NCBI GenBank assembly: GCA_044892525.1
Contig: CM097886.1
Span: forward strand, 90,892,001 to 90,956,000
Direction: 5' to 3'
DNA: 64,000 bases
From: Schmidtea polychroa
Lineage: Eukaryota
Below, in pieces: positions 5,100-57,979 of this stretch (position 1 is the first letter of the stretch; the number at the start of each line of letters is the position of its first letter). The position numbers and the translations under genes are program-made. The notes beneath the pieces are model-generated. The model saw only the letters and a program-made list of their open reading frames with translations. It was not told where the DNA came from and did no database searches.

Positions 5100-6280
5100 A
5101 TTTATAATAAAAAATGTTGATAGAAAGTAATATTTAAGAGCTTGAATAATGATCTCATATCTATATGGATCAAAATCCAAGCCTTATAGTTTAATTTACA
5201 TAAAAAAATTACTTGAAAGTCATTTCTAAAATGACTAAAATAGTTAAACTTATAAATAAACAATTTCATCACAAATGGTAAGGCATTTATAATTGATTGT
5301 ACACAACCTACATGGGCGTCCGCAAAGAGAGGCACATCTTCATTCCTTGTCTCTGGTTTTCATTAGTTTATTTATCTTTTCGTGGCTCCAACTTGTACCA
5401 CATCTCTATAAGTTCTTTCCCAGTTGTAGGTCGTATTGATCTCACAGTGTTTACTTGTTCAATAACCTTGTTAACTTTTTCTATCTTCTTTTTAGTTTCT
5501 TTAATCTGTTCCGCCGTTTTCAGATCTTTCATTTCGATTTCTTTTCTGATTTCTTTATCTTTTATGCAATATTGAGCGTGAAAATCAGCATTAAAGCTTG
5601 TCTCATCAAATAACGGTGCAAAGGCCAAAAGGTGCATAACTGGAGCATCTTCTCTTTCTTTTCCTGTGAAGACAATAAAAATACCAATGAAGTGTGTAGA
5701 ATTTTCAGACCATCCGTCAAATACTAGTGCATAACAAGGTGCTTCTTTAGCTTGGAGAGAAATCTTTTTTTCTACTTTGTCTGCTACCTTAGACATATAC
5801 TTTTTTAGTGTTTTGTCGGAAATAGATTCAAGATTTGTATTTGCACGAGTAAACTCTTTTTCACAAAAAATGAGTTCATGTTCATCCATTATGATCCATT
5901 CCATCCATTTGTAAATGTTTTTTTATCTAGTATCAAGCATGTACTCTAGAGTAATCTGTCGTCATGCAAGAGAAGGAACAATTTCTCGAGATTCGTTACT
6001 ATTTTAAATATCTTGGGAGTCAACTTCGGCACTAGTACTTTTACTTAAGTGGTACATATCAAGATAATTTTTGTGTTTCTGTTTGATATGGCTTATTAAG
6101 TTAGAGTAACCAAGTTTTATGTTCTGCTTACGAACATTTCCATGAATTGGTTACCGGATCTATAGGTGCTATGCCAAAATAAAGTTGGCATATTAATTTA
6201 GTTTCTGGAATTACAAAACGATTAGGGCATACACGTGAATTAAGCATGACGGCAACTTGATGAAATTTAAATAAATTGAT
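5100..6280 (-). pseudogene. hAT transposase remnant
   Basis: ORF 5368-5904 contains CYALVFDGWSENSTHFIGIF (first catalytic Asp region of hAT transposases). An upstream fragment GYSNLISHIKQKH is BED-finger-like. Stops and frameshifts are present. Confidence 0.75.
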
Positions 6281-7124
6281 TTTATTATTAATTTACTTTA
6301 AGTAATAATGTTCTGATATAAAAAGATACTATCAAGTGGTTAACTGTCTCAATATATGAAGACCAGCAGTGTTCAAACATATGTTTAGCTTATGAGTGAG
6401 GCAGTACTAGAATTTTCGATAAAGTAAGTGCTACTATCGAATTGACACTGCACAAATGTATGTGGGTATCTATAATAATACTGCAAAATTACCTTTTGAT
6501 TAGATTAAAAGTACAAAATTGGTTTGCAGTGAGAATTCGTTTTTCACCGTTTAGATCACTGGACCGTTCTGATATTTTATTCTTTGCACAAACGCGTCTG
6601 CAGGTAACTATTTGATAACAAATATATTTTAGAATAATTCGTAATAATTATTTATTATTTCAAATAATTTAAAAGTAATTAGTTCTATTAATTTAATACT
6701 CTCAAATGCAATTTAACTTATAAAAGAATTATCATTAGACTATAATATAACATAATAGTAAGCAATACAATACAAAAGATTGTTATTGTGGCCCAATACA
6801 ATACAAAATATTGTAATTGTGGCCCCTTACAATACAATATATGTTATTGTGGCCCAATACAATACAATATATTGTTATTGAGGTCTAATACAATACAATA
6901 TATTGTTATTGTAGCCCAATACAATACAATATATTGTTATTATAGCGCAATACAATACAATATATTGTTATTGCTCAGATAAGCAATATATTGTATTGTT
7001 AACAATATATTGCAATATATTGTCAGTACAATATATTGTTGCGCAGCCTTGCTCTTAAATAGTAATGTATATTGCGTTATAACTAACACATTGTATTGAA
7101 TTACGCAATATACTCTGAACTGCT

Positions 7125-10100
7125 TCACATTTGGTCCTTGGCCTCTAATGTAATATCATTACTCTCCCCTTCATAAGATTGATGCCATCTCTTTAACCAT
7201 TCGATTCGTCGATGCCGCGTCGTATCTGTATATTGCAATTCAACTTGATGATCTGAAAGAAATCTAAGAATTTTATATGGACCATCATATTGAATATCAT
7301 TTTTGTTTCTTCTATGTGGTTCTCGTCTTACTAGTACCTCCACCCCCACTTCAAAATGTCGTTTAATTCTTTTGCCTTTTTCGAATTTCCTCATCTTTTG
7401 CTCAGCTTGCTTGTTATTCTTTTGTGCTTCTTCCGAAATATCGTATACTTGATATTTGAGTCTAGAATTAGCGTGTAACTTTATTTTCCGCCCATATACT
7501 ATCTCAAATGGTGAATATTTTGTAGAACTTTAATAAGTTGCATTTATACTGAATTCAATTCGAGGCAACAGTTCGTGCCACTGTTTTTCAGCACAGCCCC
7601 CTTTCACCGTCGTCACAGGTAAATCTCTCATTGTTCTGATAGGTCTTTCCACTAAGACATTCTACTGATGTTGATATGGCGAGGCGAATTCTTGCTTTAT
7701 TCCAAGTTGTTCTAATTTTTTCTTAAAATATTTGCTTTCAAAATTTCGCCCTCTGTCTGTCAATATACTTTGAGGTTTACCATAGTTGTAAATCCAATTG
7801 TTCATTAGCGTCTTCAAAATAGTTTTTTCATCTTGGTTTGCTGTAGCCGTTAGACTTACTAATTTGCTAAACCTCTCAATAATAACGATAACATACATTT
7901 TGTCGGTTGAAGTTTTCTCCATGAAAGCAACATCCATCACAATCTGTTCTAGAAATTCAGAACTTTCGTGTGTAATTAAAATTTCCTTTGTCTTCCCTTG
8001 ATCTATTTTCCTTCTTGCACATGTGACACATTGTTTTACTATCTCTTTAACGGTTTCTTGCATTTTCGGCCCGAAAAAATTCCCTTCCAAATAATGAAAG
8101 AGTTTCTTAATTCCAACGTGACATAAATCTTCATGTATTTTAATCACTAATTTAGATTGATAGCTTTTTGGGATTATCACTAGATCTATTTTGTCTGATT
8201 CCAATACAAGCATATCATCCGATATCTTTAACCGATCTTTATATCTGAATAAAAAACTATTTAGAAACGATTTCTTCCGAACATCTATCTGATTTTTAAG
8301 AATTTGCATCACTTCCTGGAACAATTTATCTTCTGTTCTTCCATAATTTCTAATATTGTCTGTGTTTTTTTGTATCAAATTTATATATCTTACTCTTGAT
8401 CTTTCTTGTTTATGTTGTACATGTGCTGTCTGACACTGTGCACATAAACTACCCTCGATCCTTGATAATCCGTCTGCGTTTGCATGTTCTTCGCCTTTCC
8501 GGTATTTCAATTGGAAATCGTATTCCGATAGATTAGCCATCCATGTCTGAAATTGTGGACTTATTGCTGTTTTATTCTTGTTCATAAATACTAAAGCTTT
8601 GTGATCTGTTCGAGCCACGAATTCTTTCCCATATAAATACTGTCTAAAATATAAAACATATTCATGCAATGCCAATAACTCTTTCCTTGTTACGCAGTAT
8701 CCCTTTTCATGGGCCGTCAGATTTCTTGAACAGTATGCGATAACTATTTCTGAACGGTCTTCTTTTATTTGACTCAACACTGCTCCAATAGCTTCAAAAC
8801 TGGCATCAGTATCCAAAATAAATTTGCGGTCAAGAATAGGTGCTTGTGTTAAGGCTTCTTTAAGTTGTCTAAAACTGTTTTCACAATTTTCTGACTATTC
8901 GATTGCTTTATCACAACTTGACGCTGCTGCATGTAGGGGTGCTGCTATTTTAGCATAATCTTTGACAAATCGTCTATAGTAATTTGTCAAACCTAGAAAT
9001 GATCGAAATTGTTTAGCACACTGTGGTTTCGTCGCTTCTGTAATTGACTTGATCTTCTCTGAATTTGTCTGTATTCCATCTTCACTGACGATGTGACCAA
9101 AGACTTTTAATTTGGTTTTGTAAATTTTGCACTTCTCCGAATTTATTCTTAGTCCTGTTTTTTTTTATTCTTTTGAAAACTTCTCGCAATCGCTCATCAT
9201 TTACAGACTGGTCATTGCCATATACCAGAATATCGTCTAAATAAACAATTGCTCCATTAAAAAATATACCCTCTAACATCGTGTGCATTAATCGCTGAAA
9301 TGTTGCTGGAACCGTTGATAATCCAAATGGAAGTCGATTGAAACAAAATTGACCTTCTTTGGAACTAAAAGCCATTTTTCTTGTGCTTCTTCTGCTAATG
9401 CGACCTGATAGTATGCTTGTCCAAGATCTAAAGAAGAAAAGAATTTAGATCTTGATTGGTTATCGAGTAATTGGGATATGTTGGGCATAGGGAAAGATTA
9501 TCTTTCTGTCATCTTATTCAACTCTCGATAATCTACGCACATTCTTATTGAGCCGTCTTTCTTTCCTACTACAGCGTCTTATAACTCCAGTTTTTGTTAA
9601 CTCTTTTATCACATCGTCAATTTTCTGTTCTAGATACATCGGTTGTCGTCTTGGAAATTGCATTGTTGGATTCCCAGATGTATTAATTTCGTGCTCTACG
9701 ATTCTTGTGAATCCTAAATCAAATCTGGCTGCCATAAATATTGACCCGAATTCATCTAATAATTTGTTAATTGTTGGCAATTCATTTCTTCCCAATTACT
9801 TTTTTGCTTTTTGTCTTCTCTCGTCATCAGTATAATTGCTAATCTTTGTCTCGGATTCGATATTGTTAATTTCCATCAACTGAACTCCAAATGCTTTCAA
9901 AGTATCTATCCCACCAATAAAACCTGGAAATATATTTTTAATAACCATTATTTTGATGGTCCTCATCTTATTGTGCCAATAAACATTTACTTCTGTACAT
10001 CTCTGTGGTTTTTGAGTTCCTGGAAAAACTCCACATATTTTGATTTCACTGCTGCTTAAACGTGGACTGCCAATTTTATTCCATGTTTCCTCATTCATCT

Positions 10101-10278
10101 CTGTAATTGAAGCTCCAGAATCCCACAACATCTCAATCTCAACATCATTTATCATCATCTTGCTCCAATCTCTTCCATCTGATGTCGCATACCTCATTCC
10201 CTCTTTTCTGTCATTCCGATTTTCTTCCTTTACAACCCCATTGACGAAATGTACGCAATAGAGTTCCTCATGTTTTTT
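7125..10278 (-). pseudogene. pol: gypsy-1 pol (protease, RT, RNase H, integrase), frameshifted
   Basis: LWDSGAS protease, YLDD RT, DTDASFEAIGAVLSQ RNase H, HEDLCHVG..CVTC integrase zinc finger, ILTDRGRNFES core. Split over ORFs 9796-10197, 9514-9795, 9288-9488, 9082-9375, 7662-8816 and 7125-7394. Confidence 0.93.
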
Positions 10279-10375
10279 TCAGTTTCCACATCATAAATAG
10301 CATAATCATTAATTGATTCTCTTGTTTCTGCATCACCCGAGTAATTTCTTCCGTTTTCTTCGTCATGCACACAAG

Positions 10376-11395
10376 CTATATTTTCTTGTTCTCATAGTTC
10401 TGTTGTTCTTTCTTTCTTAATAAATAACAATCACCGAAATTATGCCCTCCAATACCACATATCAAACATTTATCTTTTAGTGGACATTCATATCTTCTGT
10501 GCCCATAATCTTCACAGCAAAAACATTGGCCTGACTGTAATTCGCCGTTTCTTGGATCAGGAAGGCCTCTAAATCGATTGTATAATCTCTTGGCAATGTG
10601 TTTAAGCGAAACCGTTGGTGTTCTTCTCTGAACATTTCGTTCGAATGTATGATTCATTTCGTTATTTCTGTTATACGAATTATCTGGTAAATTCTCTCTT
10701 CTGTAATTTCCTTGGCTTCTTAATACATTGGTGTTACTTACATTTGTTTCTCTTGTAAACGTTTCTGAATTTCTTCTCCTTGTTGCTTCCGCGTAACTAC
10801 TCTTCTTTATTACCAGGATTTCTTCCGTCTTTTCTTTTGATTCCACTTTTTCGTAAATTTTGGCCAGTTCTTCTGCTGTCATCGATGGTTTCATTGTTAG
10901 AGCATCCTTTAATCTTCTGTCTCTGACGCGTCCAGTTATAATTTCACTACCCTCATTCCTGAATTAATAACTTCACTCACTAATTTTAATACCCTGATTT
11001 TGAAGGTTGCATCTCTCATTTTCCTCTTGTCATATTGCAGCCAGTTCTTTAATCTTGTCTATTATAGTCAATTTAATTGTAAAGGTTTCGGAAAACCATT
11101 CTTTAGCTGCTTTATCTGCTGTGAAATATTTCCACAAAGTAGCCGATTCATCGCGAAGGAGAAAATCGAATGCTTCTGTCCTCTTCAAATGATTCCTAGC
11201 GATCCAATCATTAATTGCCTGTATCCATTTTTCAGCTTCCTTGGTACATCTGCCGCCGTATCTTCTAATTTCCATATCCAAGAGTTTTTGTGGACGTTTC
11301 GGTAGCGCGTCTCTTGCAGACTTTTTCCCTTTTCCTCGAGTCGTCATTTTGTGAGCATTTTGGGCGTGGTCGCCAGTTTCAACAATTGGTTCCAT
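10376..11395 (-). pseudogene. gag: gypsy-1 gag with two CCHC zinc knuckles, disrupted
   Basis: ORFs 11030-11395 and 10376-10894. CFCCEDYGHRRYEC and CLICGIGGHNFGDC knuckles. Homologous to gag at 58116-59231. Confidence 0.9.
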
Positions 11396-11554
11396 CTAAA
11401 GGTTTATTATTATTAACACAGAGTGATCACTCTTAAATAGTAATGTATATTGCGTAATAACTAATACATTGTATTGAATTACGCAATATACTCTGAACTG
11501 CTTCATATTTGGTCCTTGGCCTCTAATGTAATATCATTACTATAATAATAATAA

Positions 11555-13032: not shown

Positions 13033-13641
13033 ATGCAGAAAATACACTATTTAAAAAGACTTTTTTAGAATTTTAAAGTAAATATTCCACGTTATGTCTC
13101 AAATATATTCTTCACAATCTTCAATCTGAGGACAAATGTCTTCGACATGCCTCGGATTTGTGACCTATTTCATTCAGATAAATACTTTAGATCATCTCAC
13201 CTTCTAGTCTGGCTTAGTTTGATTTCTTTTTTTCTTTTCTGAATATGACACTTTTCAGACTAAACTTATTTGCTTTTTTCATATTGGGTTAAATCAGGCA
13301 TGAGCAACTTGTTTTTGTTAGGGGCCAGTTCAGTCTTTGAAAATGTTTCGGGGGCCGGATGTATTTAATACGAATTTATTAATGTATATTCCAATAATAT
13401 ATCTTTTTAATAGCAAAGATCATTTAAATTTACATGATTAGGCATATATTATATATTATATACTATATACTAGTTGTTATTGGAAGGCAAAATATAAAAA
13501 CTATGAAAATACCCAAATTTAACTTTAATAATCCCATATTTATAGTTTATTTACTCGCACAAACTCTGGATTGTTCGAATTTATATTTTTTATGCTTCTC
13601 AAGTTTGCATATACTACTCAAATATACCCAACATATCAATA

Positions 13642-14005
13642 TCAATCTTGTTCTGGTTTTGGTCTGTGTGACATTTGACACTTCTTATCACGACATAAAT
13701 CTGAAATATTTGCCTTGATAGTTGCTGTTGCTACTCGTAATTCGTTTGACAAGTTATCATCAGTGAGCCGACATCTGTTTTTGCACTTTGTTTGTTTCAT
13801 CTTAGAAAAGAATTGTTCACAGATGTAAGTGCTGGGGAAAAGTGAGACCATTTTCAGCGCATGATATCGGATTGATGGAAACGCTTTCTGAGAAATGTAG
13901 AGTTTTTAGAATTGAATCAAAGAGACGTCACGAAACTTTCTTTTCAGATCGCCATTACACTGCAATTCAATGAGCTCCATTTGCATTGATTCTGGTGCTG
14001 TCTGT
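13642..14005 (-). pseudogene. C-terminal remnant of a SPIN/GTF2IRD2-like hAT transposase
   Basis: TAPESMQMELIELQC...SLFPSTYICEQFFSKMK...RLTDDNL, the dimerisation-domain region. One in-frame stop; the N-terminal three quarters are absent. Confidence 0.88.
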
Positions 14006-14040
14006 TTATTATTTATTATGCAATAATTACAATCTTTAAA

Positions 14041-14211
14041 TGTAGTCTGCAGTGAGCATGCAGCTACATCAATAATAATAATACTAATATTTTTATTCTA
14101 TACATATACTCTCTTTATAATATTATTTTAATAATTTAATATGTTTAGTTAGCATGCAACTAAAGACTCTTATTATATAAATATGTAGGTTACAGTGAGC
14201 ATGTAACTACA
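14041..14211 (+). repeat. Cluster of stem-loop motifs (loop core CAGTGAGCATG) upstream of PolB
   Basis: Copies at 14041-14068 and 14184-14211, plus a shortened copy at 14144-14164. The full copies are followed by (AAT)n. Confidence 0.8.
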
Positions 14212-14484
14212 GAAACAATAATAATAATAATAATAATAATAAAATCCCTATTATAGTTTACAAGACTTTATTAATATTTTACAATTATTAATATTTATTT
14301 CATTTTTATATTGTATTTAAATGAAACATATATCAATAATTGTAAAAGAACTAAATGATAAAAGAAATATAAATGATATATTAATTTCATGATTAATAAT
14401 AATTGATAAATATAATTAACAGGCAAATTTTATCTACATTACTGCCAGGCTTCAACTGGTCACTCAAATTTATGTCACAAAGGG

Positions 14485-17400
14485 ATGAAAAAATATTATG
14501 GTCGTAAATTTTATGGCATCAAGTACTATATATGCCCAATATGCGAGACTTCCCATAGCATTAAATATTTAGAGTTTTACAGTATACATAAATCCCATTT
14601 AAATCAGTTCTCTTTAAATAAAAAGGATTTATTTAACAAACTACGAAATACTGCAAAACCTATAATTAAAACTAATGTAAATAATACAAAACCTGTAAAT
14701 AATATTACAAAACATGTAAATAATATTACAAAACCTGTAATTAAAACTAATACAAAACATGTAAATAATATTACAAAACCTCTAATTAATAATGTTATTA
14801 ATGTAAATAATAATTTAAAAAGACCTGCTGTTAGTATTGGGTCTGATGCTCCCTCTAAAATTAATAAATTAGAACAAATAACTGTGGTTAATAATATTCA
14901 AGTAGGCGGTTCAGTCGATATTGACGATGAACCTGAAATCGAAATTGATTTTAAGGGGGTTCGAAAGAATCTAAGATTTAATGTAGAAAAGGATAACATC
15001 GTTCAAATAACCATAACCGATAAAATCGTTAATAAGTTAAAACATGAAATAAACAGAATGGGGTCGGTGAAAATACAATTCTCTGTATTGATTCAATTTG
15101 AAAAAGATGGTGAAATTAAAGATAATTTCTTCTCGAATAGGGCAGAGGCTTTTTCAGATAGTTTTCTAAGTGAGGGGGTTCACAAATTAAATAATAAAAT
15201 AGAAAAATTCACATATTTGGGTAGTGGATGGCGGGTTGTTAAAATCAAAGAAATAGATTTTATATTAACAAAATTTACACATATGAATAGGCTAGCTGGA
15301 CTTAGTTACATCCCCACCCCATCAGCTTTAAAATCTAAAAATGCAATAGTAAACGTTAAAAACACCGATGATATATGCTTTATATATAGTATTTTAGCAC
15401 TTTTAAAACGTAATATTATACATAGACATAGGAACCGTGTTAGTTCCTATGAAAATTATCTCAACGAGTTAAATTTTGACCCCATTTCCGACTGTCCAAT
15501 GAAACTATGTGATATTCCTAAATTCGAGATGAAAAATAAGGATTTAAATTTAGCAATAAATGTTTTAACTTATAGAACGACCCCTGCTAAGCCTTTTGAA
15601 AATATAGTTGACGATAATTATATTCCACATCATCCTCAATTAGATATTATTCACCGATCTAAGGTTATATGTGGTGAACCCATATATTTACTTTTATTGG
15701 AAGACGGAGATAATTTCCATTATACCGCCGTTTTCAATTTGCAAAAATTAATGAACTCGCACCGTAGTAGCTCTTGTAGTGTTCAAATTTGTGTAAACTC
15801 GTGTCCCCATTGTCTTAACGGATTTCGACTTAAAAATGCATTTGATATTCACGTTGCCTTATGCATTAAAAACCAGATAGGTACTACTTTATATACCCTA
15901 CCTAAAGATAAAAATTTAATTTTTCAAAATTATGCGAAAACCATAACCCCGCCATTCGTGATATATGCAGACTTTGAATCAATTTTACCGGGGGATATAA
16001 TACACCATCAAAAGCATTTGCCAATAACAGCAGGTTTATTATTAATAAATAATTATAATAACTCTAAATTTTATTATGAGTTTGTTGGGGATGATTGCAT
16101 CTTATCTTTCTTGCGTAAGGTGGAGGAAATTGCTATGACAATTGTCCTGCCATATTACGAAATTAATGGGAAAAAGCCCATGCAAACCTTGTCTTTCGCT
16201 GAAGAGCGGGCCTTTCGTGATTCCAGAACCTGCTACCTTTGTAAAAAATTCATTAGAAATAGAGTTAGGGATCATTGTCACTTTTCGGGTAAATATCTTG
16301 GTGCTGCCTGTAGGAAATGTAATGTTTCTCGACGAATTCAGAAACAGTTACCTGTGGTTTTTCATAATTTGAGGGGGTATGATCTTCATCATATTTTGAA
16401 GTATGGTTTGAATAATTTTCCTTCTTGGGAATTAAATATTATTCCGACCACTACTGAGAAATTCATCTCTCTTATCGCGTACATTAACAAATTGTCTGTT
16501 CGTTTTATTGACAGCATGCAGTTTGTTAATTCATCTTTAGCAAAAGCGGTTAAGACTCTTTCCGATCTGCCTTTAACTTCTTCTGTTTTCGATGGCGCAA
16601 TTGTTCGAGCCAAAGGTATCTTTCCTTATGACTTTGCCACATCTCTTGAGGTTCTGGAATCGACTCTTGAATTGCCACCTATTTGGGATTCTGTGTCTAA
16701 TGATGAATATGCATTAGCTCAAGTTATTTGGACTCAGCAAAACTGCAATAACATGTTAGATTACATGTTAACTTACCTTAAATTAGACGTGTTTCTCCTC
16801 GCAGACTATTTCCAACAATTCCGTGCAAAGGCCATTGCTTATAATGGTCTTGAGCCTCTTAATTTCTATGGCATTCCCGGTATGTCATGGGCCTCTGCGC
16901 TTATGACATTAACGGAACCCATTGAACTTTTGCAGGACATGGAAATGTTTAATTTCTATGAAGGAGGGATACGGGGTGGGTTAACATTTGTTAACAAACA
17001 TTATGTTGCAAGTTCTGAAGACACAGAACTCTTGTATATTGATATTAATAACTTGTATGGTTGGGCCTTAAGCCAAAATCTGCCTTATGCTGACTTTGTT
17101 TGGGTGTATGATGATCTTGATTCTGTCTTGAATGAATGTATGAATGCTGATATCGATAACCTTCCATATGGTTATACTATGGAGGTAGATATCGATATAC
17201 CTGATTGTTTGCATGACTTTCTGAATGATTTTCCTCTTGCTCCGGAAAAGATGTGCCCGCCAAATTCTAAAGTTGAGAAGCTGATGCTCACGCATTGGCC
17301 GAAGAAGAACCATGTTCTTCATTGGCGACTTCTCAAGTTGTATATAGAATTGGGGGCTATTATTAAAAATGTACATAGAGCAATCAAATTTAAGCATGCA

Positions 17401-18465
17401 CCCATTTTTAAATCGTACATAGACAAAAACACTAATTTGAGAGCCAATTCTACATGTGAGCTGCACAGAGATCTATACAAATTATTTAATAATAGTCTGT
17501 ATGGGAAATCCGTAGAAAACCTTAAAAAACGGATGAATTTGAGGTTATGCAATTCAGCTGAAAAGATGATTGTATATGCTTCAAAGCCGACTTTCAAGAA
17601 ATCTATCAAAATTGATGATGACTTGATTGCTGCACATCTCAATAAGGATTCTATATGTTTAGACAGGCCTAGTTACATTGGCCAAACGGTGCTAGACCTG
17701 TCTAAACTGAGGATGTACCAGTTACAGTATAAAGAATTGGCTAAATATAGAAATGAATTTAAATGTGAGATAAATATCGTTGCCGGCGATACTGACTCCT
17801 TTTTTCTTGAGGTTAGGCACTGTAAGCTTGACACTCTTTTGCCGGCAATGATTCGTGACAATCTTTTAGACACTTCCAACTATGACCCTGCACATCCCTT
17901 ATACTCTAGAGACCTTGATTCGGTGATAGGTAAATTTAAAGATGAAAGTAAAGGTCTAGGGTATAAGGAATGGGTTTTCTTAAGACCCAAGTGCTATAGT
18001 TTATTAGGGGCTAAAGATCATTTAAAAGCAAAAGGAGTCAGGTTAATAGGTACAGAAATTAGGCACGATTCATATTTAGAATGCTACAATAACGACGTAG
18101 TATTTTCTGTGCCACAAAGTAAGATAGGGACGCGGAACCATCAATTGTACACATTTAAAAACAATAAAATCGCGTTGACAAACAACGACGACAAGCGGTT
18201 TTGGGTGGGGAAAAATTTCAGTCTCGCATTTGGTCATTATTTAGCACTAGATGATATAAATGATGATCAAATATTTGAAGAAGTTGGGCCACTATTCGGA
18301 GGATTAAGTCCAGATTTTGTTTCTGGTGATGAGGAAGTGGGTCCACTTTTCAATGGTTTAAGTCCAGATTTCGATTCTGGTGATGATCCTAATGATGAAA
18401 TTGATATTGACGATGTACAATTGAGTGACGAAATTGATATTGATGATGTACAATTGAGTGATTAA
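14485..18465 (+). CDS. Polinton/Maverick (adintovirus-type) protein-primed family B DNA polymerase, intact
   Basis: 1326-aa uninterrupted ORF. Exo motifs YADFES, FHNLRGYD and YLKLDV. Endonuclease VII-like insert RDHCHFSGKYLGAAC. Pol motifs YIDINNLYG, YKLFNNSLYGK and GDTDS. Confidence 0.96.
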   Translation: MKKYYGRKFYGIKYYICPICETSHSIKYLEFYSIHKSHLNQFSLNKKDLFNKLRNTAKPIIKTNVNNTKPVNNITKHVNNITKPVIKTNTKHVNNITKPLINNVINVNNNLKRPAVSIGSDAPSKINKLEQITVVNNIQVGGSVDIDDEPEIEIDFKGVRKNLRFNVEKDNIVQITITDKIVNKLKHEINRMGSVKIQFSVLIQFEKDGEIKDNFFSNRAEAFSDSFLSEGVHKLNNKIEKFTYLGSGWRVVKIKEIDFILTKFTHMNRLAGLSYIPTPSALKSKNAIVNVKNTDDICFIYSILALLKRNIIHRHRNRVSSYENYLNELNFDPISDCPMKLCDIPKFEMKNKDLNLAINVLTYRTTPAKPFENIVDDNYIPHHPQLDIIHRSKVICGEPIYLLLLEDGDNFHYTAVFNLQKLMNSHRSSSCSVQICVNSCPHCLNGFRLKNAFDIHVALCIKNQIGTTLYTLPKDKNLIFQNYAKTITPPFVIYADFESILPGDIIHHQKHLPITAGLLLINNYNNSKFYYEFVGDDCILSFLRKVEEIAMTIVLPYYEINGKKPMQTLSFAEERAFRDSRTCYLCKKFIRNRVRDHCHFSGKYLGAACRKCNVSRRIQKQLPVVFHNLRGYDLHHILKYGLNNFPSWELNIIPTTTEKFISLIAYINKLSVRFIDSMQFVNSSLAKAVKTLSDLPLTSSVFDGAIVRAKGIFPYDFATSLEVLESTLELPPIWDSVSNDEYALAQVIWTQQNCNNMLDYMLTYLKLDVFLLADYFQQFRAKAIAYNGLEPLNFYGIPGMSWASALMTLTEPIELLQDMEMFNFYEGGIRGGLTFVNKHYVASSEDTELLYIDINNLYGWALSQNLPYADFVWVYDDLDSVLNECMNADIDNLPYGYTMEVDIDIPDCLHDFLNDFPLAPEKMCPPNSKVEKLMLTHWPKKNHVLHWRLLKLYIELGAIIKNVHRAIKFKHAPIFKSYIDKNTNLRANSTCELHRDLYKLFNNSLYGKSVENLKKRMNLRLCNSAEKMIVYASKPTFKKSIKIDDDLIAAHLNKDSICLDRPSYIGQTVLDLSKLRMYQLQYKELAKYRNEFKCEINIVAGDTDSFFLEVRHCKLDTLLPAMIRDNLLDTSNYDPAHPLYSRDLDSVIGKFKDESKGLGYKEWVFLRPKCYSLLGAKDHLKAKGVRLIGTEIRHDSYLECYNNDVVFSVPQSKIGTRNHQLYTFKNNKIALTNNDDKRFWVGKNFSLAFGHYLALDDINDDQIFEEVGPLFGGLSPDFVSGDEEVGPLFNGLSPDFDSGDDPNDEIDIDDVQLSDEIDIDDVQLSD

Positions 18466-18771
18466 GCGATTTTAATATCTTTTTTCTGTGATAAATTAAT
18501 ATAACTTTATAAAAACATTGATTTGTGTTGATTTTTATTAATGAAATGTTTTCGTATTTTTTTTCTATGGATAAAAATCATTATATTGTGTAATATTATT
18601 AAACATTCCTTAAGTGTTTAAACATAGAAAGTATATTAAAATTTTTTTATTATTGAAAACTAGTAATGTTGTCACTATGGATTAGGACTTTGTTTTGAGC
18701 CATTAAAAGAATTTAAATTTTTATAAAGTTTTATTATTTTTATTTAATTTGATAATACTGTTCATATTTAC

Positions 18772-18799
18772 TTTAGTTTGCAGTGAGCATGTAACTAAA
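18772..18799 (+). repeat. Third full copy of the CAGTGAGCATG stem-loop, downstream of PolB
   Basis: tttagtttgca-gtgagca-tgtaactaaa, followed by an A-run and (AAT)n. Confidence 0.8.
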
Positions 18800-18816
18800 T
18801 ATCGTTGAAAAAAAAA

Positions 18817-18941
18817 TAATAATAATAATAATAATAATAAAGTTTAATGGGTTGTGTGTGTGTAGTACCCTTGCGAGCAATACCCATAGGGGGACAGAAT
18901 ATCTTGTCGGATAGATTATATAAAATAATAATAATTATAAT

Positions 18942-19010
<69 letters not shown>
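18817..19010. repeat. (TAA)n microsatellites
   Basis: Directly visible. Further tracts at ~14216-14240, ~39867-39903 and ~40375-40446. Confidence 0.95.
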
Positions 19011-19014
<4 letters not shown>

Positions 19015-19049
19015 TAAATTAATATGTAATCGATAATTAAAACAAAGAT

Positions 19050-19992
19050 TATTAGTTCTAAAAATATTAGGCATCATTCTAAAATTAAGAGGCATCATTC
19101 TAAAAATATGACGTAATAGTTCTAAAAATATGAGGCATCGTTCTAAAAATAAGAGGCACCATTCTAAAAATATTAGACATCGATTACGTAATAGTTCTAA
19201 AAATATTAGGCATCATTCTAAAAATATTAGGCACCATTCTAAAAATATTAGACATCGATTACGTAATAGTTCTAAAAATATTAGACACCATTCTAAAAAT
19301 ATTTGGCATCGTTCTAAAAATATTACGTAATCATTTTGAAAATATTACGTAATTATTCTAAAAATATTAGGCATCGTTGGGTGAGTCATTGGGTGAGTCA
19401 TTCTCTTTGTTAATATTAATGATGATGATACCTTCAATAGCTCATTCGAAAGGTCTTGGACTGAGCTTTAAGATGAGGTATCGTCCAATAAATTCGGATA
19501 ATGGGAACATTAATTTTTGGGATGAAAAAAAGTAGGTCACCGCTGGACCAATTAATAATATTTTGAATAATAATAATAATTTAACGTTGAAAAGATGGTG
19601 GTCATCAATTGTTAATAACATTAAAACTATTAAAGATATATAAAATACCTATAGCTCATTCGAAAGGTCTTGGACCGAGCTTTAAGATGAGGTATCGTTC
19701 AATAAATTCAGATGATAGAAACATTACTTTTGGGAAGAAAAAAAGTAGGTCACCGCTGGACCAATTAATTTAAAAAAAATTACGTAATAGTTCTAAAAAT
19801 ATTAGGCATCGTTCTAAAAATATTAGGCATTGATTACGTAATAGTTCTAAAAATATGTGGCATCGTTCTAAAAAAAAATTTCCGGGGGGGGGGGTATATG
19901 TGGTCTGGCGGTGACATGGTCTGGCGGTGACATGGTCTGGCGGTGACATGGTCTGGCGGTGACATGGTCTGGCGGTGACATATCATACTACT
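19050..19992. repeat. Polinton terminal region: ~20-bp minisatellite, ~130-bp direct repeats, G run, 5 x 16-bp repeats, ACTACT terminus
   Basis: ttctaaaaatattaggcatc-type units (19050-19375 and 19790-19870). Duplicated block at ~19437 and ~19651. (TGGTCTGGCGGTGACA)x5 at 19901-19980. Ends ATACTACT at 19992, the reverse complement of AGTAGT, a typical Polinton terminus. Confidence 0.8.
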
Positions 19993-20409
19993 CACCAACG
20001 AACTTGGGATCATCTTCAGCCCTGCACAATTATACGCTCTACATGAAAGTTGGAAGTTTCCTTAATAGAATATAACTAAATACTTCACAGTGAGGTGTAA
20101 ATGTGGAGAGGTGACCGGAAGTTTACTGCTGCACCACCACGCTTATATTAAATGCGTATTTGTACTAATGGTGTAGCTCTAACGTCAACTGCATACATTC
20201 CTGAAAGCTTATCAAGGGCCTGGTTATATGGTGTGGATCAATGAACACTGGGGGCCGGTCAAAAGAGGCTCGCGGGCCGGATCCGGTCCGCGGGCCGTAT
20301 GTTGCTCATGCCTGGGTTAAATGCACATATTTTTCATTGGCAGTGCCGAATCACACCAATATACACCATCTATAATGGAGCATTTTCTAGCTTCGGTAAT
20401 GGTCTTTAA

Positions 20410-22240: not shown

Positions 22241-23350
22241 ATGGGATATTTTACATCGAGAAAGTTAAATTATTCATACAACGACTCCCCTTATGACATG
22301 TTATATTTGTGTGATCCCAATACTGAGAATATGGATATAAATTGTGCGATTAGTGAAATCCTAGGATTTGCATCGGGATATATTTTCCCATTCATTGGTT
22401 TCATTGGTGTCGTAAGCAATATTTATATTTCTTATATTTTTCTTTTAAGGTACCCCAAACGAACAAGACAGACGATTTTGTTATCATATTTGGCGTTATC
22501 TGACTTTTTGAACATTGTAGCATTCGGTTGGTTATGGATATTTCCTGCGAAAGGGTTACCGTTTATAACCAATGGAAACATTTACTTTTTTATTATAAAT
22601 CAATCAAGCGTCTCCTGTACAATTTTTCGAACTTTTTACTTTTATACATCAACGGTCACATTTGCTATTTTTCTTTTAGTTTGTCTCGACAGATGTTTCG
22701 CCATTTATTTTCCACTGAAATCGTTGCAAATCACAAACAAAATGGTATTCCTAACATGCTCGACCGTATTTCTTTTTTGTCTTCCTCTAACGGTTTTGTA
22801 TACGGGCTTCATTCGAACAATTTACGAACATCCGTATTTTTTCTGTACGATTGGAAATAAAAATAAAAGCCTGAATATGTTTTTGAATTTGTATCGGGTT
22901 TTGATCGTACATTCAGGAATTCTTTTCATTGTTGGAATAATCTTATCAAATCTTCTGTTGATCTTAAAATTGGTTCTTTTATCTAAAAAAAGTCTACTGC
23001 TGATTAAAACAAAATCCAATAATATTCAAAGGGAAATTCGTTCAACGATCACCATTCTAATTTTATCGCTCATTTTTCTCAGCGGATCCTTACCAAATAC
23101 TTGTCTTTTTATCATCATGAAATCATTACAAAATGACAGAAAGAAAAATCAGAACTATTTGCAATTTCTTTACTCTCTAACTGATATGAGCCTACAACTG
23201 CAGATTTGGATTGAGTCGTTCAATTTTCTGGTTTACGTTTTCAGAATGAAAAACTTCAGAGCATTGGTCTTTTCAAATTCCCCTAAAAACCTTTCTATAA
23301 CATCAACGGTAAAAAATAAAATCACTTTTCAATTATCAAATGTAAAATGA
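22241..23350 (+). CDS. Intronless class A (rhodopsin-family) GPCR, peptide-receptor/orphan type
   Basis: Seven hydrophobic segments. TM1 GVVSN, TM2 LALSD, TM3 CLDRCFAIYFP, TM6 SLP, TM7 NFLVY followed by FR. Confidence 0.9.
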   Translation: MGYFTSRKLNYSYNDSPYDMLYLCDPNTENMDINCAISEILGFASGYIFPFIGFIGVVSNIYISYIFLLRYPKRTRQTILLSYLALSDFLNIVAFGWLWIFPAKGLPFITNGNIYFFIINQSSVSCTIFRTFYFYTSTVTFAIFLLVCLDRCFAIYFPLKSLQITNKMVFLTCSTVFLFCLPLTVLYTGFIRTIYEHPYFFCTIGNKNKSLNMFLNLYRVLIVHSGILFIVGIILSNLLLILKLVLLSKKSLLLIKTKSNNIQREIRSTITILILSLIFLSGSLPNTCLFIIMKSLQNDRKKNQNYLQFLYSLTDMSLQLQIWIESFNFLVYVFRMKNFRALVFSNSPKNLSITSTVKNKITFQLSNVK

Positions 23351-24750: not shown

Positions 24751-27539
24751 GCAGAGACTCTTCACATTTTGAACTTCCATTAAGAAGTATAAACTTGATA
24801 ATGTTTCAACAAGATTCAATAAAGAATAATCAAGAAAGAAATAAGACCAAAAAGGTCAGGACCAAATTCAAAACAATTTATTAAAAAATGATCCAAAAAA
24901 CATTAAACTGATTTACAAGTTTGAGAATGTTCTTGATGAAAATAAAAAGAATAGAACCCCAAGCATATTAAATTATGTTTCAGGAGATAATATTAAATAA
25001 AGGTAGAAAATTTACGTATATATATAATATAATATTTTTAAATATTTCTATGACCTTATTTAAAATTTTTGCCCGAACAGGCCAATATACCCAAATATCG
25101 GATTTAATATTTTTAATTGACGGCATTTTTCTACTGTATCCTTTTATACATTACACATTATTATATATTTTATTATAACATATAGAAATCCGGCAAGGGA
25201 TTTTGTTTTAATTGCAACAATTTTTACAATAAATGTCTTTATATTTCACGGATGAAACTATCAAATGTTATATTGTTGTTGAATGATATAACGAGTGGCA
25301 CGATGGGGAAGTTAATTTTTAAACGTCATCCACCTGGATCACAACTCGTCGGAGTGATTATTTCCATAAATTTGGCATTAGAATTTCATCGAGAAGGATT
25401 TTTGATCATTCGACTAGTTTGAGGGAGTAAATTGCATGCGACACTCGCTGAAACTCATTTACAATGTCTAGATGTACAGGAACCTGGATCAATTACCCTT
25501 TCGATTGAGTGGTCACATAGAATTGATATATTGGTTATAACACTAAAGAAAAATAACAAAATTTACTCTGTGAATTGGACTCTTACCTCCGTAAGTCTCT
25601 CGCATTCGTAGATGGTCGATTGTTTGCCATTTTGGTTTGGATTAAAATGCCCGTTTTGACTTGACTACCTCTTATATCGGTGAGATGTGATTCTTGTGCT
25701 GGGACTTTTCTACACCATACACTTGCGCACCAATTTTTGGAAAATTTCTCTCTATGAAATATCTGCGATCAATGTGCGGATTTATGAGCATGTGCTTATA
25801 TGCGTACGCGAGCTTCTCTAGTGTGATGCAGGTCTGGTTAGCGACGTGGCTTTGAATCATTTCTGGCATTCGAGGTGAGTCTATCGATTGGAGTTGATGG
25901 TGCATGTGCTATTCACTCCCCTGTCATGTCATTCCGATTGTCATCGTGGCATTTTCTCCATTCGGTTCTGGAGTGCGTGTTGTGTGTGTCATGGTGTGCA
26001 TTTCATTTTTTATCGCATTCCAATTAGAGAAGACTAATTCAGATGGCTTCATTTCTCATAAACATTTAGAATTCGGAAAGATTTTCGGTCGATTTACATC
26101 AAAGTTATCTCTTTGTAGCTCCATCCTGGACGCTGATTTTGTATTAAATCGTCGAGTCTCTGCCTGAACTTCTTCGTTATATTTATCGCGTTGATGGTGC
26201 AAATGTAGTCGAACCATTGGTTATTATTCGGCATCTGGTAGTGGTAAGAGTAGATCACATGTGGGAATTGAAATTCGATTCCCTAAGTTCGCATTCGCAT
26301 CATCAATCGACAACCAATCATGGATCAAACCAAGTTCAAGGATACTTCGGACGAATAGTAGACAATGTAGTTTACACCTACCTATGTGAGAAAATAATTA
26401 CAAGATTACCAGAGAAACCTGTAATACCAAGGAACAAGCGTGCAAACGAACTCGAAATAATTCACAAAGAAAAGCAAGTTATGTGCAAGCGGTCACGAGA
26501 ATAATAAACCCAGAAGGTTTTCAACCAAATTTATTTAATTGCAGTAACGCACAAGGACCAATGTTCAAAAGAGAAGACGAAAATTGGTTTCAAGCAAAAC
26601 AATTACACCAATGCCAAATAAATTCGGATTGACAAAATTAACAACCGAAATCAAATTCAAACCAGTGAACGTATCTCAAAATGGATTATATACGATAAAA
26701 GACCTCAAATCACCAAGAGCGCACATGTTATTTCCAGCAAGGAGACAAGCAATTTTTTTGAATATATTGATAATATCAGGAGGAATCATTCATGGAGAAA
26801 TTTCGAATTATAAACTACTGCTAACATCAGAACATTTTCTGCATGCAACAGCCAACATGATGAAAGCAATGTGGGACGATTCTTGATATTCGGTCAGATG
26901 ATGGCAGAGTTACTAGGAATAATACAAATACAAATAGTCAGAGTAATAATAACACGAATGCTACAGTGTTTCGACATTTATTGACGAGAAAGGAAAGTAA
27001 ATTGGAAACTATCAATTGGATTCCTACCATTTTTATACAAAAGAATGGTGTTACATGGACACTGAAGATATTCACAAAATAAAAGACTACTGAGAATACT
27101 AGAAAAAATGAAAGGAACCGACGAGGAAGTCGAAAGAAAATTCAAAGAGATAATGAAATCAGAAGCAGAAAGAGCCCAAGAAAAAGTGGGAAAGCCAAGA
27201 GACTGGAAAAGATGGATAACAAGTCAGGCGTAATGAGGACAGCGATGACGATAACGACTAGGGCATCCAAAATCGGACAGGTTTTTCATTTCCGGGATTC
27301 CTATATTAATATCGATATTGAACTTCTACAATTAAAAAGTTTTAAAATCAATGTTTCACTGAAAAAATCCTCAGATATGACTAAACAAAAATTAAAATGT
27401 AAATTAACGAAACTTTTCTTTCTTCAAAAAAATTTGGCAAAAGTTAAGATTTAGTACATTTATTTAGTTATTTAATTATTTTTCTTTTGATGCTCTTTCT
27501 GGAAGTGGGCCCACAGAAAACATAGGACATTTAATTTAT

Positions 27540-29340: not shown

Positions 29341-30530
29341 GTTAATAAATTAGTCTTATTGCTTAAAGATATATTCAAATACAAACTGATTGAGTAATAA
29401 TTGGTATTATTAAAACAATTGATTTAAATGGCGAATCAATTAATTTAATAATAATGATGATTATGCGTGCCAGCATTTATACTTATTATAATTTTACTAT
29501 ATAATAGTATTTGATACTTATAATACAATATATATTTTATTTATAAATAAGTTATTTAAATATCCCTTTAAATTATATAAAATGGTGCTGGAAATTGTAT
29601 ATTATCCCTGTTTTTGGTTTACCTGTATTGCAACCAGTAACAAGTAAATTATGCTAAGACAGACTAAATTGATCTGTCTCAAGATCTGCTTAATAAGAAT
29701 AACTGTTGAGGAATTGGATGAAATTTCTTGTTATAATTTCAAAATAATATTTTAAAATAATTTTTATAAAATGAAATAACTAAAGAAGCAATACCAGGAT
29801 TCAGTCTGATCTGATCTTGGCCGTGAGGCGGAAAGATGTTGGTGTGGCCAACCGGCAAAAAAAATTAACTATTTCTCCAACTGGTTTTCTCACTCGTGTA
29901 TTCCAGAAAGCAGACGAGTGGGAGGCAACCTAAATAAAACATATCATAAGGTGTACATAATAGAAACTTGACATCGGAGAAAGGTTAATTCTGAAAGACC
30001 AAGGGATAAAAAAAATTGAGGAGAAAGCGACGAAAAGAAGACCGAATGATGACGATTATCCAGCGGAAAGTGGACGAAGAAGGAGAGCGACCGATCCCGA
30101 AAATTTATAAAACTTTAATAAAATTTTGTTTTATATTTATTCAAAGATTTAGTTAGGTAAAAACCACAGCGAATAAGATTAAGGAAATAGTAAATATTGA
30201 AAATAATATATAAAATCAATAAAAAGAAGTATTATCACTTGGAAGTAAATTAAAATCAAATTGATTGTAGAATAAATAAAACAAAAGTTCATTTAAACAA
30301 ATATTATTACAGTCTCGTGTTTCAAATCTTCAAATTTCTCATGTTTTAAATAAAGTTCCTGATACAGAAATCTGAGATAACAATCAAGGACAAAGAGTTA
30401 GGACTAAGCCCGTGACTCCAGAACCTCGTCAGGACATTGTATTAATGTCATTTTAATATTATTTTTCTATATATTTTATTCATTTTGCTTGTTATCCATT
30501 TCGTTTGGGCGCATAATTTGCTCACGTCGA

Positions 30531-31471
30531 CAGAGCCGTAACAAGGCATTATTGCGCCTTAAGCGGTTCATATATCGGAGTTCCCAACACATAAATTCAT
30601 ATATATCCTCATTAGAAACTTACTCTATTGTAATCTTACAAAATTTTCTCTGCAACAAAATAAATTTTGCGTAAATAGTGAATTGTGACTAAAATGCGTC
30701 CGTAAATAAACCCTATTTTTAGTGTGCAAGTTCATTGATGTAGTAAACTAATTCGAATTATTTTAATTCTAATTAATTTGATTCCTAATTTTTGTCGATT
30801 TTAATAGCGATTTTGGCAAATTAATTTTTTTGATTTTCTAAATTTTAAATTTGCCACCATGATGGATATGGGCATTTCCAGAATATACCATACTATTTTG
30901 TAATAGTTTAGTATATTATTTTTATTTTATGCGTTTTTTGTTAATTCTTTTTTATAATTTTGTTATTTTAAAACGTAGTTTTTAGTTTTTGCTTATTTTA
31001 TTGGATTGTTTGGCGAACCTGATGGATTTTGCCGTTTTGATGGGTTGTTCTGCGTTTTTATTTGTTTTCTATTATAATTTGATTTTTAAATTATTTTTCT
31101 ATCCTAATTTTATGGAAATTTCTCTGATTTTTGTTCTTATTTTGCATTATCGCCTTAATTCGAATTTGTTTATTGTTGTTATGTGTTCCGGTTGTGTGAG
31201 TAAGTTTCATGCAATACTTCTTATGTTTGATTTTTCTTTTAATTTGGGTATTTTACTGTCTGCTATTTTTTTTTACTTTGTGTTTATTATCTTTTATTTT
31301 GAGTACACTTAATGCTGGGTATGCGTGTTATGTGCCTCTGCATTCCTTCGCAATCCTAACTTGGGGTCTAAAAATCAGTTTTTGCCCAAAAGTAGTCTGT
31401 TTTGAATTTGTGTGTTGGGAACCCAGATATATGAACCGCTTAAGGCGCAATAATGCCTTGTTACGGCCCTG
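30531..31471. mobile_element. hAT-type MITE with ~70-bp TIRs and inverted 91-bp flanks
   Basis: Termini CAG(A/G)GCCGTAACAAGGCATTATTGCG. The same terminus recurs, ending at ~40911, with an unrelated flank. Flanks 30440-30530 and 31472-31562 are reverse complements of each other. Confidence 0.75.
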
Positions 31472-33449
31472 CCAATGTGAGCAAATTATGCGCCCAAACG
31501 AAATTGATAACAAGCGAAATGAATAAAATATATAGAAAAATAATATTAAAATGACATTAATATATATATATATATATATACTGTTGATATGTTTTTTCCC
31601 TTTGCAATAGGAACGTAAGATTGACCGAGATCTTCGTTGTTATCATTTTGATAATTCAAGTCAATAAAATGATTCACAACCCGGAGTGGTGGTCAACTAC
31701 GTTGTGTACACAGCGTTGGGTAACCGCTTGAAAATACTTCGTGGTGACCAACTTAGTTAACGAAAATATGATTGGTGCTAAACTTAACCTAACTAATTTA
31801 TCTGCTGATACAACGGGGTTTTGATTCGGCTGTGGCTGTGGCTCCGCAATAACATTAGGGTTTGACGTACCGTGTTGAGTCGGCTGGGAAACTGAACAAC
31901 TTGAGTAATTAAAATACTCATAGAGCAAGTTACTAATGTTGGGTCGCCTAGGGGTGTGTCATTTTGAATGTGCTAGGGGTGCTGAGAGATACTGAGCGAC
32001 TCCTTCCTAAATGACCACATGATTATTGTACTTTAGACCATCTGTATACCCATGGCGATGACCATGTTGGTGATATATACAATGGTTGGAAATTCATGAG
32101 GTGATCTCTATTACTAAAACTACTCCTCATGATATTTTCATCTTCGGGTTCTAGATTGACGATAGAAGGTCTTACGTCGCTTAGTCCCCTAACAGATCTA
32201 CGGTTAGCTTTGTTAACTCTATTCTATTCAAGATACGATAAAGAATACATAAATTTATATTAAGGAGACAGATTAAAAATAACAAAACACTCGATATTGT
32301 GTCAACCATCAAAAACAAATCAATCGAAACAAATGTACGCCAGCCATATCATGTCAGTTCAGATTCGTCATGCGACCAGTTATCCCAATGTTTATTTATG
32401 ACACATTGAAGTGGTCAGGGGCGACCGTGTCCAAGAATCAGTATTCCCGACTTCCTTAAGTAACTCTGTCAATTCAAACTCAGGGTGATCTAGCTCCATC
32501 CATGGAGTACCCGAGGCTGGGACGACAGTGTAGACGGAATATTTAGACGTATCCAGGGCAGACATGAGTTCAACAACCATATTAGTGTTTTTGTGTAGAT
32601 TAATAGAGCTTCGGCCTCAGCTTGTTTTTCTTTTCGTCGTTTCGTGCGCTCGGCTCGAGTGAGCGAATAACGCTTTGGTTTCGTTGTTAGTACGGTTGAT
32701 GTTGCTGCCTTTTCGGGGGGTGCGATTTTGGCAAGAGCCAGGCTTGTCCCCATGTAGACAATATAGGGGGTCGAACGAGAAAATGAACTCTTGCTGTGAT
32801 TGGTGCAGATTGTCTGCTTGCGGGAGTTGGAAAACTAGGATTGATGTTGACTGGGTAAAACGCTGGTTTTGTCTATGATGGGCAGTTCCACAATACGCTT
32901 TACTAATTCCGAATCGGAATAAATTCGGTGCAGGGCTTGAGACTGCTCACGAATGAGCACGGACTGCAATCCTGTTTTCTTCTAGCAGGCTATCCCTGTA
33001 ATGTTCCAATGGAAGGAATTTCTTTGTCGACTCTTTCATCTGGCTAGGGGCGAACCAGGCCCTGTACAGGTAATCTATCCGTTTCTTGGGGAGCCCGATC
33101 TCGGATTGGAGAGTTTTATTGGCGGTGTTCTTGTCCGCATAAGAGAAACATGGTTTCAAGATAGTTCTTGGTACGACTGTGGCAGGCATAGTTCTATAAA
33201 AATATAAGAGAACAGTTATAGCTAATGTCCATCGAGTTTTCAGATGATAAACGCTCATAAAAATTTTAGCAACATGGTCGTTGAAAATTAAGATGTGAGA
33301 AGAAAATTTCCCCCATTGTTATCCAGTTAACCTATTCCGACACTTTAATCCAAATCATTAAAATCAATAATATAGAATGAAATTTCATACCTCCTTATCA
33401 GGTTAAACTAATTTAAAAAGTTAATTCGGTCCATGACATTATCAGTGAG

Positions 33450-40539: not shown

Positions 40540-40912
40540 CGAAAAATTGCAAAAGTAAAATTGGGATGTAACATTTTTTTAATGTTACCAAAAATTAAAA
40601 AAATATAAATAAAAAATATTTTCAAATGTATGCACGAAAAAAATGACACCCTAGCTAGCATTCTTCAACATAACTGGTTAGACTGGTCCATTGGCGTGCC
40701 TTCGTAGGTGTGTATTTTGTAAAATGTGAGTCCTCAAAATGGGTTCTTGTCATTTTTCCACTTAGCAACAGAATTTTAAGAGTATTACTACCTATTATAA
40801 TAATCTTAACATGAACATTATAATTATTATATTAGGCTGTTTTGAATTCGTGAGTTTGGGGCGCCAGATATATTAACCACCAAGGACGCAATAATGCCTT
40901 GTTACGGCCCTG
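40540..40912. mobile_element. hAT MITE fragment (one terminus)
   Basis: Ends CCTTGTTACGGCCCTG. Its interior is the reverse complement of ~43740-43950. Confidence 0.65.
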
Positions 40913-57900: not shown

Positions 57901-57979
57901 GTCCTTCATTTCCTATTTCACAATTTATTGTCTTGACTCCACCGACGAAATGAAACCCATGGAGTCGCTGTTGTTTTTT
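54907..57979 (-). pseudogene. pol: gypsy-2 pol (PR-RT-RH-IN) with several lesions
   Basis: LWDSGAS, YLDD, DTDASFGAIGAVLSQ, HEELCHIG..CEIC and ILTDRGQNFE motifs across ORFs 57578-57877, 57375-57659, 55536-57368, 55241-55780 and 54907-55263. Confidence 0.94.

Follow-up and report, generated by a model that had tools for sequence, protein, structure and literature searches.

A hAT transposon shell around an intact Polinton-type DNA polymerase in Schmidtea polychroa: a chimeric element probably formed by nesting and internal deletion

Ds-like derivatives of hAT transposons classically originate from abortive gap repair after excision. Teratorn, a multicopy element, reportedly keeps a working transposase together with a whole viral (herpesvirus) genome. 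It is a composite DNA transposon, in which a piggyBac-like transposon is fused with a virus (PMC10175614). Among virus-like elements, Mavericks (Polintons) most commonly show the end motif 5'-(AGT)2//(ACT)2-3', with a 6-bp duplication (Barreat and Katzourakis, PMC8097293), and the 'Alpha' type of family B DNA polymerase (PolB) of adintoviruses and Polintons combines an OTU-like N-terminal domain with pfam03175 (Starrett et al., PMC8502044). Here we analyse a stretch of 64,000 nucleotides (nt) from Schmidtea polychroa (assembly GCA_044892525.1, contig CM097886.1, positions 90,892,001 to 90,956,000 of the forward strand; hereafter the window, ~30% GC), in which the two ends of a hAT transposon enclose a Polinton fragment with an intact PolB gene.

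The chimeric unit is 7,020 bp long (13295–20314), and its outer bounds are the hAT ends. The locus contains two hAT ends with their target-site duplication, the stub of a transposase gene, an intact polymerase and a single viral end. The explanation that we favour, with a probability of roughly 0.6, is the integration of a Polinton in the 5' arm of a hAT transposon, followed by one internal deletion that left a non-autonomous chimera as the remnant. The unit is a well-delimited chimera of known parts and does not look like a new kind of mobile element. The original prediction for this locus, made from the sequence alone, had proposed the same structure of hAT shell, stub, protein-primed PolB (pPolB) and one Polinton end, and offered two histories for it, a one-off deletion or a composite element mobilised by hAT. 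We agree with its view that a single locus cannot separate the two; the structural reading holds, and the evidence favours deletion after nesting.

The terminal inverted repeats (TIRs) of the hAT element are 14 bp long. They lie at 13295–13308 (+ strand; the 3' end relative to the transposase) and 20301–20314 (− strand; the 5' end), and each is the perfect reverse complement of the other. The 8-bp target-site duplication (TSD) is perfect as well, with identical copies at 13287–13294 and 20315–20322 that adjoin the TIR ends directly, exactly as had been predicted. The TIR pair accounts for the only two perfect copies of the 14-mer in the window, for which shuffled sequences give a chance expectation of 0.2 matches per window at up to two mismatches. 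The combination of a matched TIR pair and an identical 8-bp flank is far beyond chance.

These matched ends also bear on the possibility of an assembly artefact, in which repeats were misjoined and hAT and Polinton pieces of different loci were stitched together. The left breakpoint of the unit indeed falls in AT-rich, low-complexity DNA, and two N runs elsewhere in the window show that the assembly is not gap-free. However, there is no N within 21 kb of the unit, and an artefact would require two independent wrong joins that restored matched TIRs and an identical 8-bp flank 7 kb apart. We therefore consider a misassembly very improbable.

Just inside the left end lies the C-terminal stub of a FAM200/ZBED5/GTF2IRD2-type hAT transposase gene (13642–14010, − strand). 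This is a broken gene, of which ~20% is left, stop codon included, while the N-terminal ~485 residues are gone. One frame covers the whole stub; it is interrupted by one in-frame stop and never shifts. On their own, the pieces of the stub fall below the Pfam thresholds. A phmmer search with the longest stop-free piece (87 amino acids, aa) against 1.84 billion representative proteins gave 1334 matches at E ≤ 1e-3, the best of them with 69% identity (E = 7e-25). The stub aligns with the C-terminal ~115–120 residues of proteins of ~600 aa, and the matches finish at the C-termini of these proteins. Above cut-off, the relatives carry a Spin-doc zinc finger (zf-C2H2_12/Spin-doc), DUF4371 and Dimer_Tnp_hAT (PF05699), to which the database records of full-length relatives add the FAM200-ZBED5 RNase-like and FAM200-GTF2IRD2-like families. 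In a tblastn search with 150 relatives, homology was limited to their residues ~487–606 and ended at window position ~14010. Hence, ~80% of the transposase is absent, in line with the expectation that nothing but a C-terminal stub would remain. The locus thus shows the marks of a hAT element (an 8-bp TSD, short TIRs, and a transposase with the C-terminal hAT dimerisation region), but it lacks the complete transposase with catalytic core that would make it autonomous, as residues ~487–606 of ~600 are left and include one stop.

The closest relative of the stub is a 1.1-kb metagenome contig (L001), which is of hAT and not of viral nature. Across the stub it has 75% DNA identity with the window, and it ends ~325 nt past the stop codon in the hAT 14-mer with one mismatch. 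L001 has further hAT coding sequence upstream of the point that matches window position 14000, and there the window diverges. This comparison independently identifies 13295 as a true hAT end and places the left breakpoint at ~14010. The hAT left arm (13295–14010, − strand) accordingly consists of the TIR, ~335 nt of 3' non-coding DNA, which is similar to the stop-to-TIR distance in L001, and the stub; at 14010 the GC content steps from 0.32 to 0.20. The 6 nt just outside the hAT end are alike in L001 (1031–1036) and the window (13289–13294), perhaps because this hAT family prefers certain target sites. A scan of JGI metagenomes with the hAT left-end pattern gave no matches.

The identity of the right arm follows from three full-length relatives (L002–L004), which contain a 606-aa gene. 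Their size is estimated at ~2.9 kb, with a 5' arm of ~700 nt; this estimate is rough, the 5' TIR being imperfect and the 8-bp flanks unmatched. A GC-rich motif in their 5' subterminal region has its counterpart towards the outer end of the right arm in the window (19993–20314, − strand, GC 0.47), with 81% identity over the outer ~40 nt. Because of this match, we regard the 322-bp right arm as non-coding DNA from the 5' end of the hAT element relative to its transposase. The unit has thus kept 322 bp of subterminal hAT DNA on the right and 716 bp on the left, and appears to miss ~1.8 kb of the hAT element.

A further hAT transposase open reading frame (ORF) lies elsewhere in the window (45485–48109, + strand). 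It is uninterrupted, encodes 874 aa with DUF4371 and Dimer_Tnp_hAT, and is of another family; its surroundings show no clear TIRs.

Most of the space between the hAT arms is taken up by the polymerase gene (14485–18465, + strand), which encodes an uninterrupted protein of 1326 aa. It is the longest stop-free stretch of the window, where the median is 8 codons. The match to PF03175 (E = 6e-28, 98 bits against a cut-off of 25.8) was recovered by scanning the C-terminal 826 aa, whereas a Pfam scan of the full-length ORF missed it. All motifs of the exonuclease and polymerase domains were found (Exo I, II and III, Pol A, B and C, and KxY). The exonuclease and polymerase core (residues 486–1250; 15940–18234, + strand) yielded an AlphaFold model with a predicted local distance difference test (pLDDT) score of 93.2 and a phi29-like fold. 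Its best match in the PDB is the phi29 polymerase (E = 2.6e-21, target template modelling score 0.72), and other family B polymerases rank eleven orders of magnitude below in this fold search. Sequence searches of the PDB gave no matches, whether the query was the protein itself or a profile of 55 sequences. Domain, motifs and fold all support the prediction of an intact pPolB.

The core is preceded by a conserved N-terminal domain (residues 150–485; 14932–15939, + strand), in which a Cys/His pair is invariant and a C2HC finger is present; its AlphaFold2 model reached a pLDDT of 90.9. Among the viral models of BFVD it matches adintovirus (E = 4.7e-18), MELD-virus (1.5e-11) and bidnavirus-like (2e-8) PolBs, and it has no significant fold neighbour in the PDB and no match in Pfam. 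We class it as the N-terminal domain of adintovirus/bidnavirus-type PolBs. The ORF fits the Alpha definition, in which the OTU label of the N-terminal domain rests on Starrett et al. (PMC8502044) and was not reproduced by our fold search. The best relative in the protein collection has 64% identity over the core. Among 30 relatives, 198 alignment columns reach a conservation of 95% or more; this PolB retains 192 of them, and the relatives themselves range from 94.6 to 100%. It is a full-length and typical member of its clade.

Two parts of the protein (residues ~50–150 and 1250–1326) are specific to the window and consist of in-frame repeats. The N-terminal stretch contains 21-nt tandem repeats, or repeats of 7 aa (14680–14791, + strand), and the acidic C-terminal tail contains 54-nt and 33-nt tandem repeats (18276–18461, + strand). 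Between Exo I and Exo II, a short zinc-finger insert (residues ~579–614; 16219–16326, + strand) resembles Endonuclease VII, a His-Me finger nuclease, at 20–21 bits for PF02945, which is below the cut-off. The same His-Me/HNH-type family is precomputed for many PolB relatives, which suggests that the insert is carried by this PolB clade. An HNH insert has been described as a synapomorphy of the pPolB2 of nematodes and oomycetes (PMC10748475); the ORF studied here is a PolB of the pfam03175 type.

The polymerase gene is flanked on both sides by non-coding DNA of the same origin. Upstream, an AT-rich region of 474 bp (14011–14484, + strand) contains two copies of a ~50–64-nt motif with an (AAT)n tail (14027–14089 and 14170–14242). 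Downstream, a repeat-rich region of 1.5 kb (18466–19992, + strand) contains a third copy (18774–18837), (AAT/ATA)n tracts, 21-nt arrays (19056–19370 and 19773–19874) and a direct repeat of ~129 nt (19428–19556 and 19645–19769). Because the motif is common to both flanks, we assign 14027–14484 to the same element as 18466–19992. Within the Polinton, the motif may be a unit that recurs between genes or has a regulatory role. It also helps to delimit the left breakpoint, which is bracketed to 14011–14039 because the hAT homology stops at 14000–14010 and the motif starts at 14027–14040.

At its far end, the downstream region leads up to the proposed Polinton terminus. Five perfect copies of a 16-nt unit (19901–19981, + strand) adjoin it, and six bases after this array stands (ACT)2 (19987–19992, + strand), which is the published 3' end motif of Mavericks. 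ACTACT occurs 14 times on the + strand of the window, so that the chance of one ending in a given 12-bp slot is ~0.3%. Moreover, the GC content steps from 0.27 to 0.47 at 19992. The Polinton end that had been predicted at this position is thereby supported by the motif, the repeats and the GC step, from which we infer that 19992 is probably the true terminus.

The rest of the Polinton is missing. No inverted copy of the terminal 1.5 kb occurs anywhere in the window, and hence a second Polinton end was not found, just as the original prediction had reported for the left end. Of the features that define Polintons, the unit has the pPolB and, at the sole end present, the end motif. It has neither two Polinton TIRs nor an integrase, as no rve domain was detected in 13295–20314, and no ORF of at least 75 aa in the unit or the window matches a capsid protein, packaging ATPase or protease, although Pfam covers capsids poorly. 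What survives is a terminal piece of ~6 kb. We rejected the possibility that this piece is a bidnavirus-like genome of ~6 kb or a linear element with PolB only, since genes of the parvovirus type are absent and the left boundary does not carry the right end in inverted form.

The two junctions of the Polinton fragment differ in kind, one being an exact viral terminus and the other an arbitrary breakpoint, and this makes nesting followed by deletion the simplest account. It would start with a hAT transposon of the FAM200/ZBED5/GTF2IRD2-like clade, either at the current locus or at a donor locus. A Polinton would then have been inserted by its own integrase in the 5' non-coding arm, 322 bp from the hAT end, which would produce the junction at 19992/19993. 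Finally, a single internal deletion would have begun within the Polinton, a short way upstream of the PolB gene, and reached to about codon 485 of the transposase. Gap repair that was aborted after excision of the hAT element could have caused this deletion, but so could any form of end joining. A right junction that coincides with the terminus, follows directly on the terminal repeats and lies at the GC step is predicted by integrase-mediated insertion and not by random capture.

Capture is nevertheless the main rival explanation. During repair of a break or an excision site, synthesis may have switched template to a Polinton, either integrated or free and linear, copied ~6 kb and rejoined the other hAT end, without any integration into the hAT element. 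This would resemble the origin of Pack-TIRs. hAT elements are the commonest carriers of captured DNA in animals, with 208 of 370 Pack-TIRs, most of which are single-copy products of gap filling with internal breakpoints (PMC8277862), and the left breakpoint at 14011–14039 lies in the interior of both partners. A free linear template would let copying run off at the terminus, which would also explain position 19992. An integrated template, however, would not be expected to give a junction that falls exactly on the viral end motif. Furthermore, captured pieces have a median length of 224 bp (PMC8277862) compared to ~6 kb here, and their parental copies usually lie within 15 kb, whereas the window contains no other PolB or Polinton DNA. 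On balance, we consider capture unlikely, albeit less so than the other rivals.

Several points also weigh against nesting and deletion. We have one locus only, in which neither the pre-deletion intermediate, nor the parental Polinton, nor an intact copy of the hAT family was seen. The junction that would carry the second copy of the Polinton's 6-bp duplication is gone, and the right junction was placed by a 6-nt motif and base composition instead of by a second copy. In addition, the stub contains a stop and the ten-fold longer PolB gene does not, which has a chance of ~8% under equal decay rates. This asymmetry hints weakly at a difference in age or constraint, and an older hAT element would explain it as well.

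The same asymmetry speaks for a composite family, in which a cognate hAT transposase acts in trans to move the chimera, several copies exist, and PolB is kept by selection for the element itself or for other Polintons. Both hAT ends retain their TIR and subterminal DNA (322 and 716 bp) with a perfect duplication, and PolB is intact and retains conserved residues to the same degree as its relatives do. Yet, the two hAT arms, the two junctions and PolB each occur only once in the 64-kb window. The window does not seem to encode a cognate transposase either; the 874-aa hAT ORF is an unlikely candidate, as its identity of ~33% extends over 36 aa and it has no matching TIR. Nor is it evident what a polymerase on its own, with a single internal terminus, would act on. 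Moreover, a working recombinase is retained in the composites known so far, such as Teratorn (PMC10175614) and casposons (PMC4046053). It is therefore improbable that a family of hAT-bounded units spreads an intact, selectively maintained Polinton polymerase through an invertebrate genome, possibly supplying defective Polintons.

Intactness of the polymerase does not require selection. Of all single-base substitutions in the PolB ORF, 4.7% would make a stop, and an unconstrained ORF of 3978 nt stays open with a probability of at least 5% only up to a divergence of ~0.3–1.9%, depending on whether an indel term is included. In any copy with less than ~0.5–1.9% divergence, an open frame of this size is to be expected. 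Because of this bound on neutral decay, youth suffices to explain the open reading frame. The TIR pair, the TSD and the 16-nt array are all perfect, and together with the conserved PolB columns this fits a young fragment. Hence, as part of the nesting and deletion scenario, PolB is probably intact because the fragment is young. The original prediction had argued for recency or selection from the contrast with a second, heavily decayed Polinton in the window. We did not find this second Polinton: tblastn with 121 PolBs detects the present ORF only, and a search for long inverted repeats did not reveal it either. None of ~100 other ORFs of the window (81 in one set) matched a Polinton hallmark family; they matched retroelement domains, zf-BED, FLYWCH and, below threshold, a viral fusion protein instead. 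The rve-type integrases of the window sit only beside the reverse transcriptase and RNase H of long terminal repeat (LTR) retrotransposons. The argument for selection thus fails, both because its term of comparison is missing and because youth is sufficient.

Youth likewise removes much of the reason to suppose that the polymerase has been co-opted by the host, with the hAT shell as an incidental surrounding. The ORF is intact and its GC content at third codon positions (0.30) is close to that of the host genes (0.34). However, PolB is still joined to viral terminal repeats, and the protein collections contain no relative of more than 64% identity that could be an ortholog. Among the explanations considered here, co-option is the least credible.

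We infer the order of events, the mechanism of deletion and the present passivity of the chimera from this structure. The chimera lacks a transposase core and an integrase and hence cannot move itself. Its sole viral terminus is internal and the second one is missing, so that replication in the manner of a Polinton is impossible as well. Movement in trans by a cognate hAT transposase is the most that could be expected; it is conceivable since enough of both hAT ends appears to be kept.

The remainder of the window contains several other elements and genes. Remnants of LTR retrotransposons of the Ty3/Gypsy type lie at ~5300–11400 and ~53700–59300 (both − strand), with protease, reverse transcriptase, RNase H and integrase domains, and one of them holds an open pol ORF of 610 aa (55536–57368). 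A single-exon gene for a rhodopsin-type G protein-coupled receptor (22241–23350, + strand) is next in gene order to a single-exon receptor tyrosine kinase with Ig domains (1234 aa; 35626–39330, + strand). The extracellular half of this kinase has no detectable relatives. For the kinase half, the nearest protein (from Logan) is 56% identical and the best named matches are flatworm kinases with 27–42% identity, so that, judging from these searches, the host lineage seems poorly sampled. An exact look-up of six window proteins in the protein collection found none of them. An element of 3.4 kb (40557–43952) has imperfect TIRs of ~220 nt around an N run (41591–41766); it was rejected as a second Polinton because the Maverick end motif is absent. 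A foldback of 1.1 kb (30440–31562) with 160-nt arms (94%) is related to this element in its arm sequence and also lacks the motif. The match to a viral fusion glycoprotein family (26548–26883, + strand; PF24664) is weak, with 22.9 bits where the cut-off is 27. It comes from a stretch of higher GC content that is full of short ORFs (~25.9–34.5 kb) and may be another decayed element. One of the 81 further ORFs matches a FLYWCH zinc finger (E = 4e-16).

If nesting and deletion is the correct reading, the locus offers a clean and young example of how a chimeric non-autonomous transposon arises, and it implies that an AT-rich invertebrate host recently had both an active hAT family and an active Polinton with an Alpha PolB. 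The finding would matter more if the same junctions were to recur at other loci, as this would reveal a cut-and-paste transposon ferrying a viral polymerase gene. A hAT-bounded family of this kind, however improbable, would amount to a cut-and-paste vehicle for a viral replication gene.

Compared to known systems, the parallels with Teratorn and casposons that the original prediction had drawn are loose only, because the transposase is truncated, an integrase is lacking, and one viral gene and one viral end are all that is present. Casposons (PMC4046053) similarly have a family B polymerase within a TIR-bounded element, but they are prokaryotic and pair the polymerase with their own integrase (Cas1), whereas the unit described here has no recombinase. 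With Teratorn it shares the union of cut-and-paste transposon DNA and virus-like DNA within the TIRs of a transposon. Yet, with a stub for a transposase and a single viral gene, it falls outside Teratorn-type fusions.

Polintons/Mavericks and adintoviruses (PMC8097293, PMC8502044, PMC10748475) resemble the enclosed fragment in their Alpha PolB, the position of PolB beside one end, the repeat-rich terminal DNA and (ACT)2. They differ in being elements of 15–20 kb, of which the ~6 kb found here lacks the integrase, capsid, ATPase, protease and second TIR. The animal Pack-TIRs (PMC8277862) are likewise hAT-type TIR elements around DNA that is not their own, and the present unit is probably single-copy. 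However, their definition asks for cargo other than transposable elements and for a parental copy. Here the cargo is itself a mobile element and not host sequence, its size is ~27 times the median, the window holds no parental copy, and one breakpoint lies exactly on a viral terminus.

The unit also compares with Ds-like hAT deletion derivatives that carry nested insertions. Like these, it has kept its TIRs, subterminal DNA and 8-bp TSD, while most of the transposase was deleted and the interior replaced. What sets it apart is the filler, which is neither hAT-internal DNA nor a short insert but a 6-kb virus-like piece with a complete 4-kb gene.

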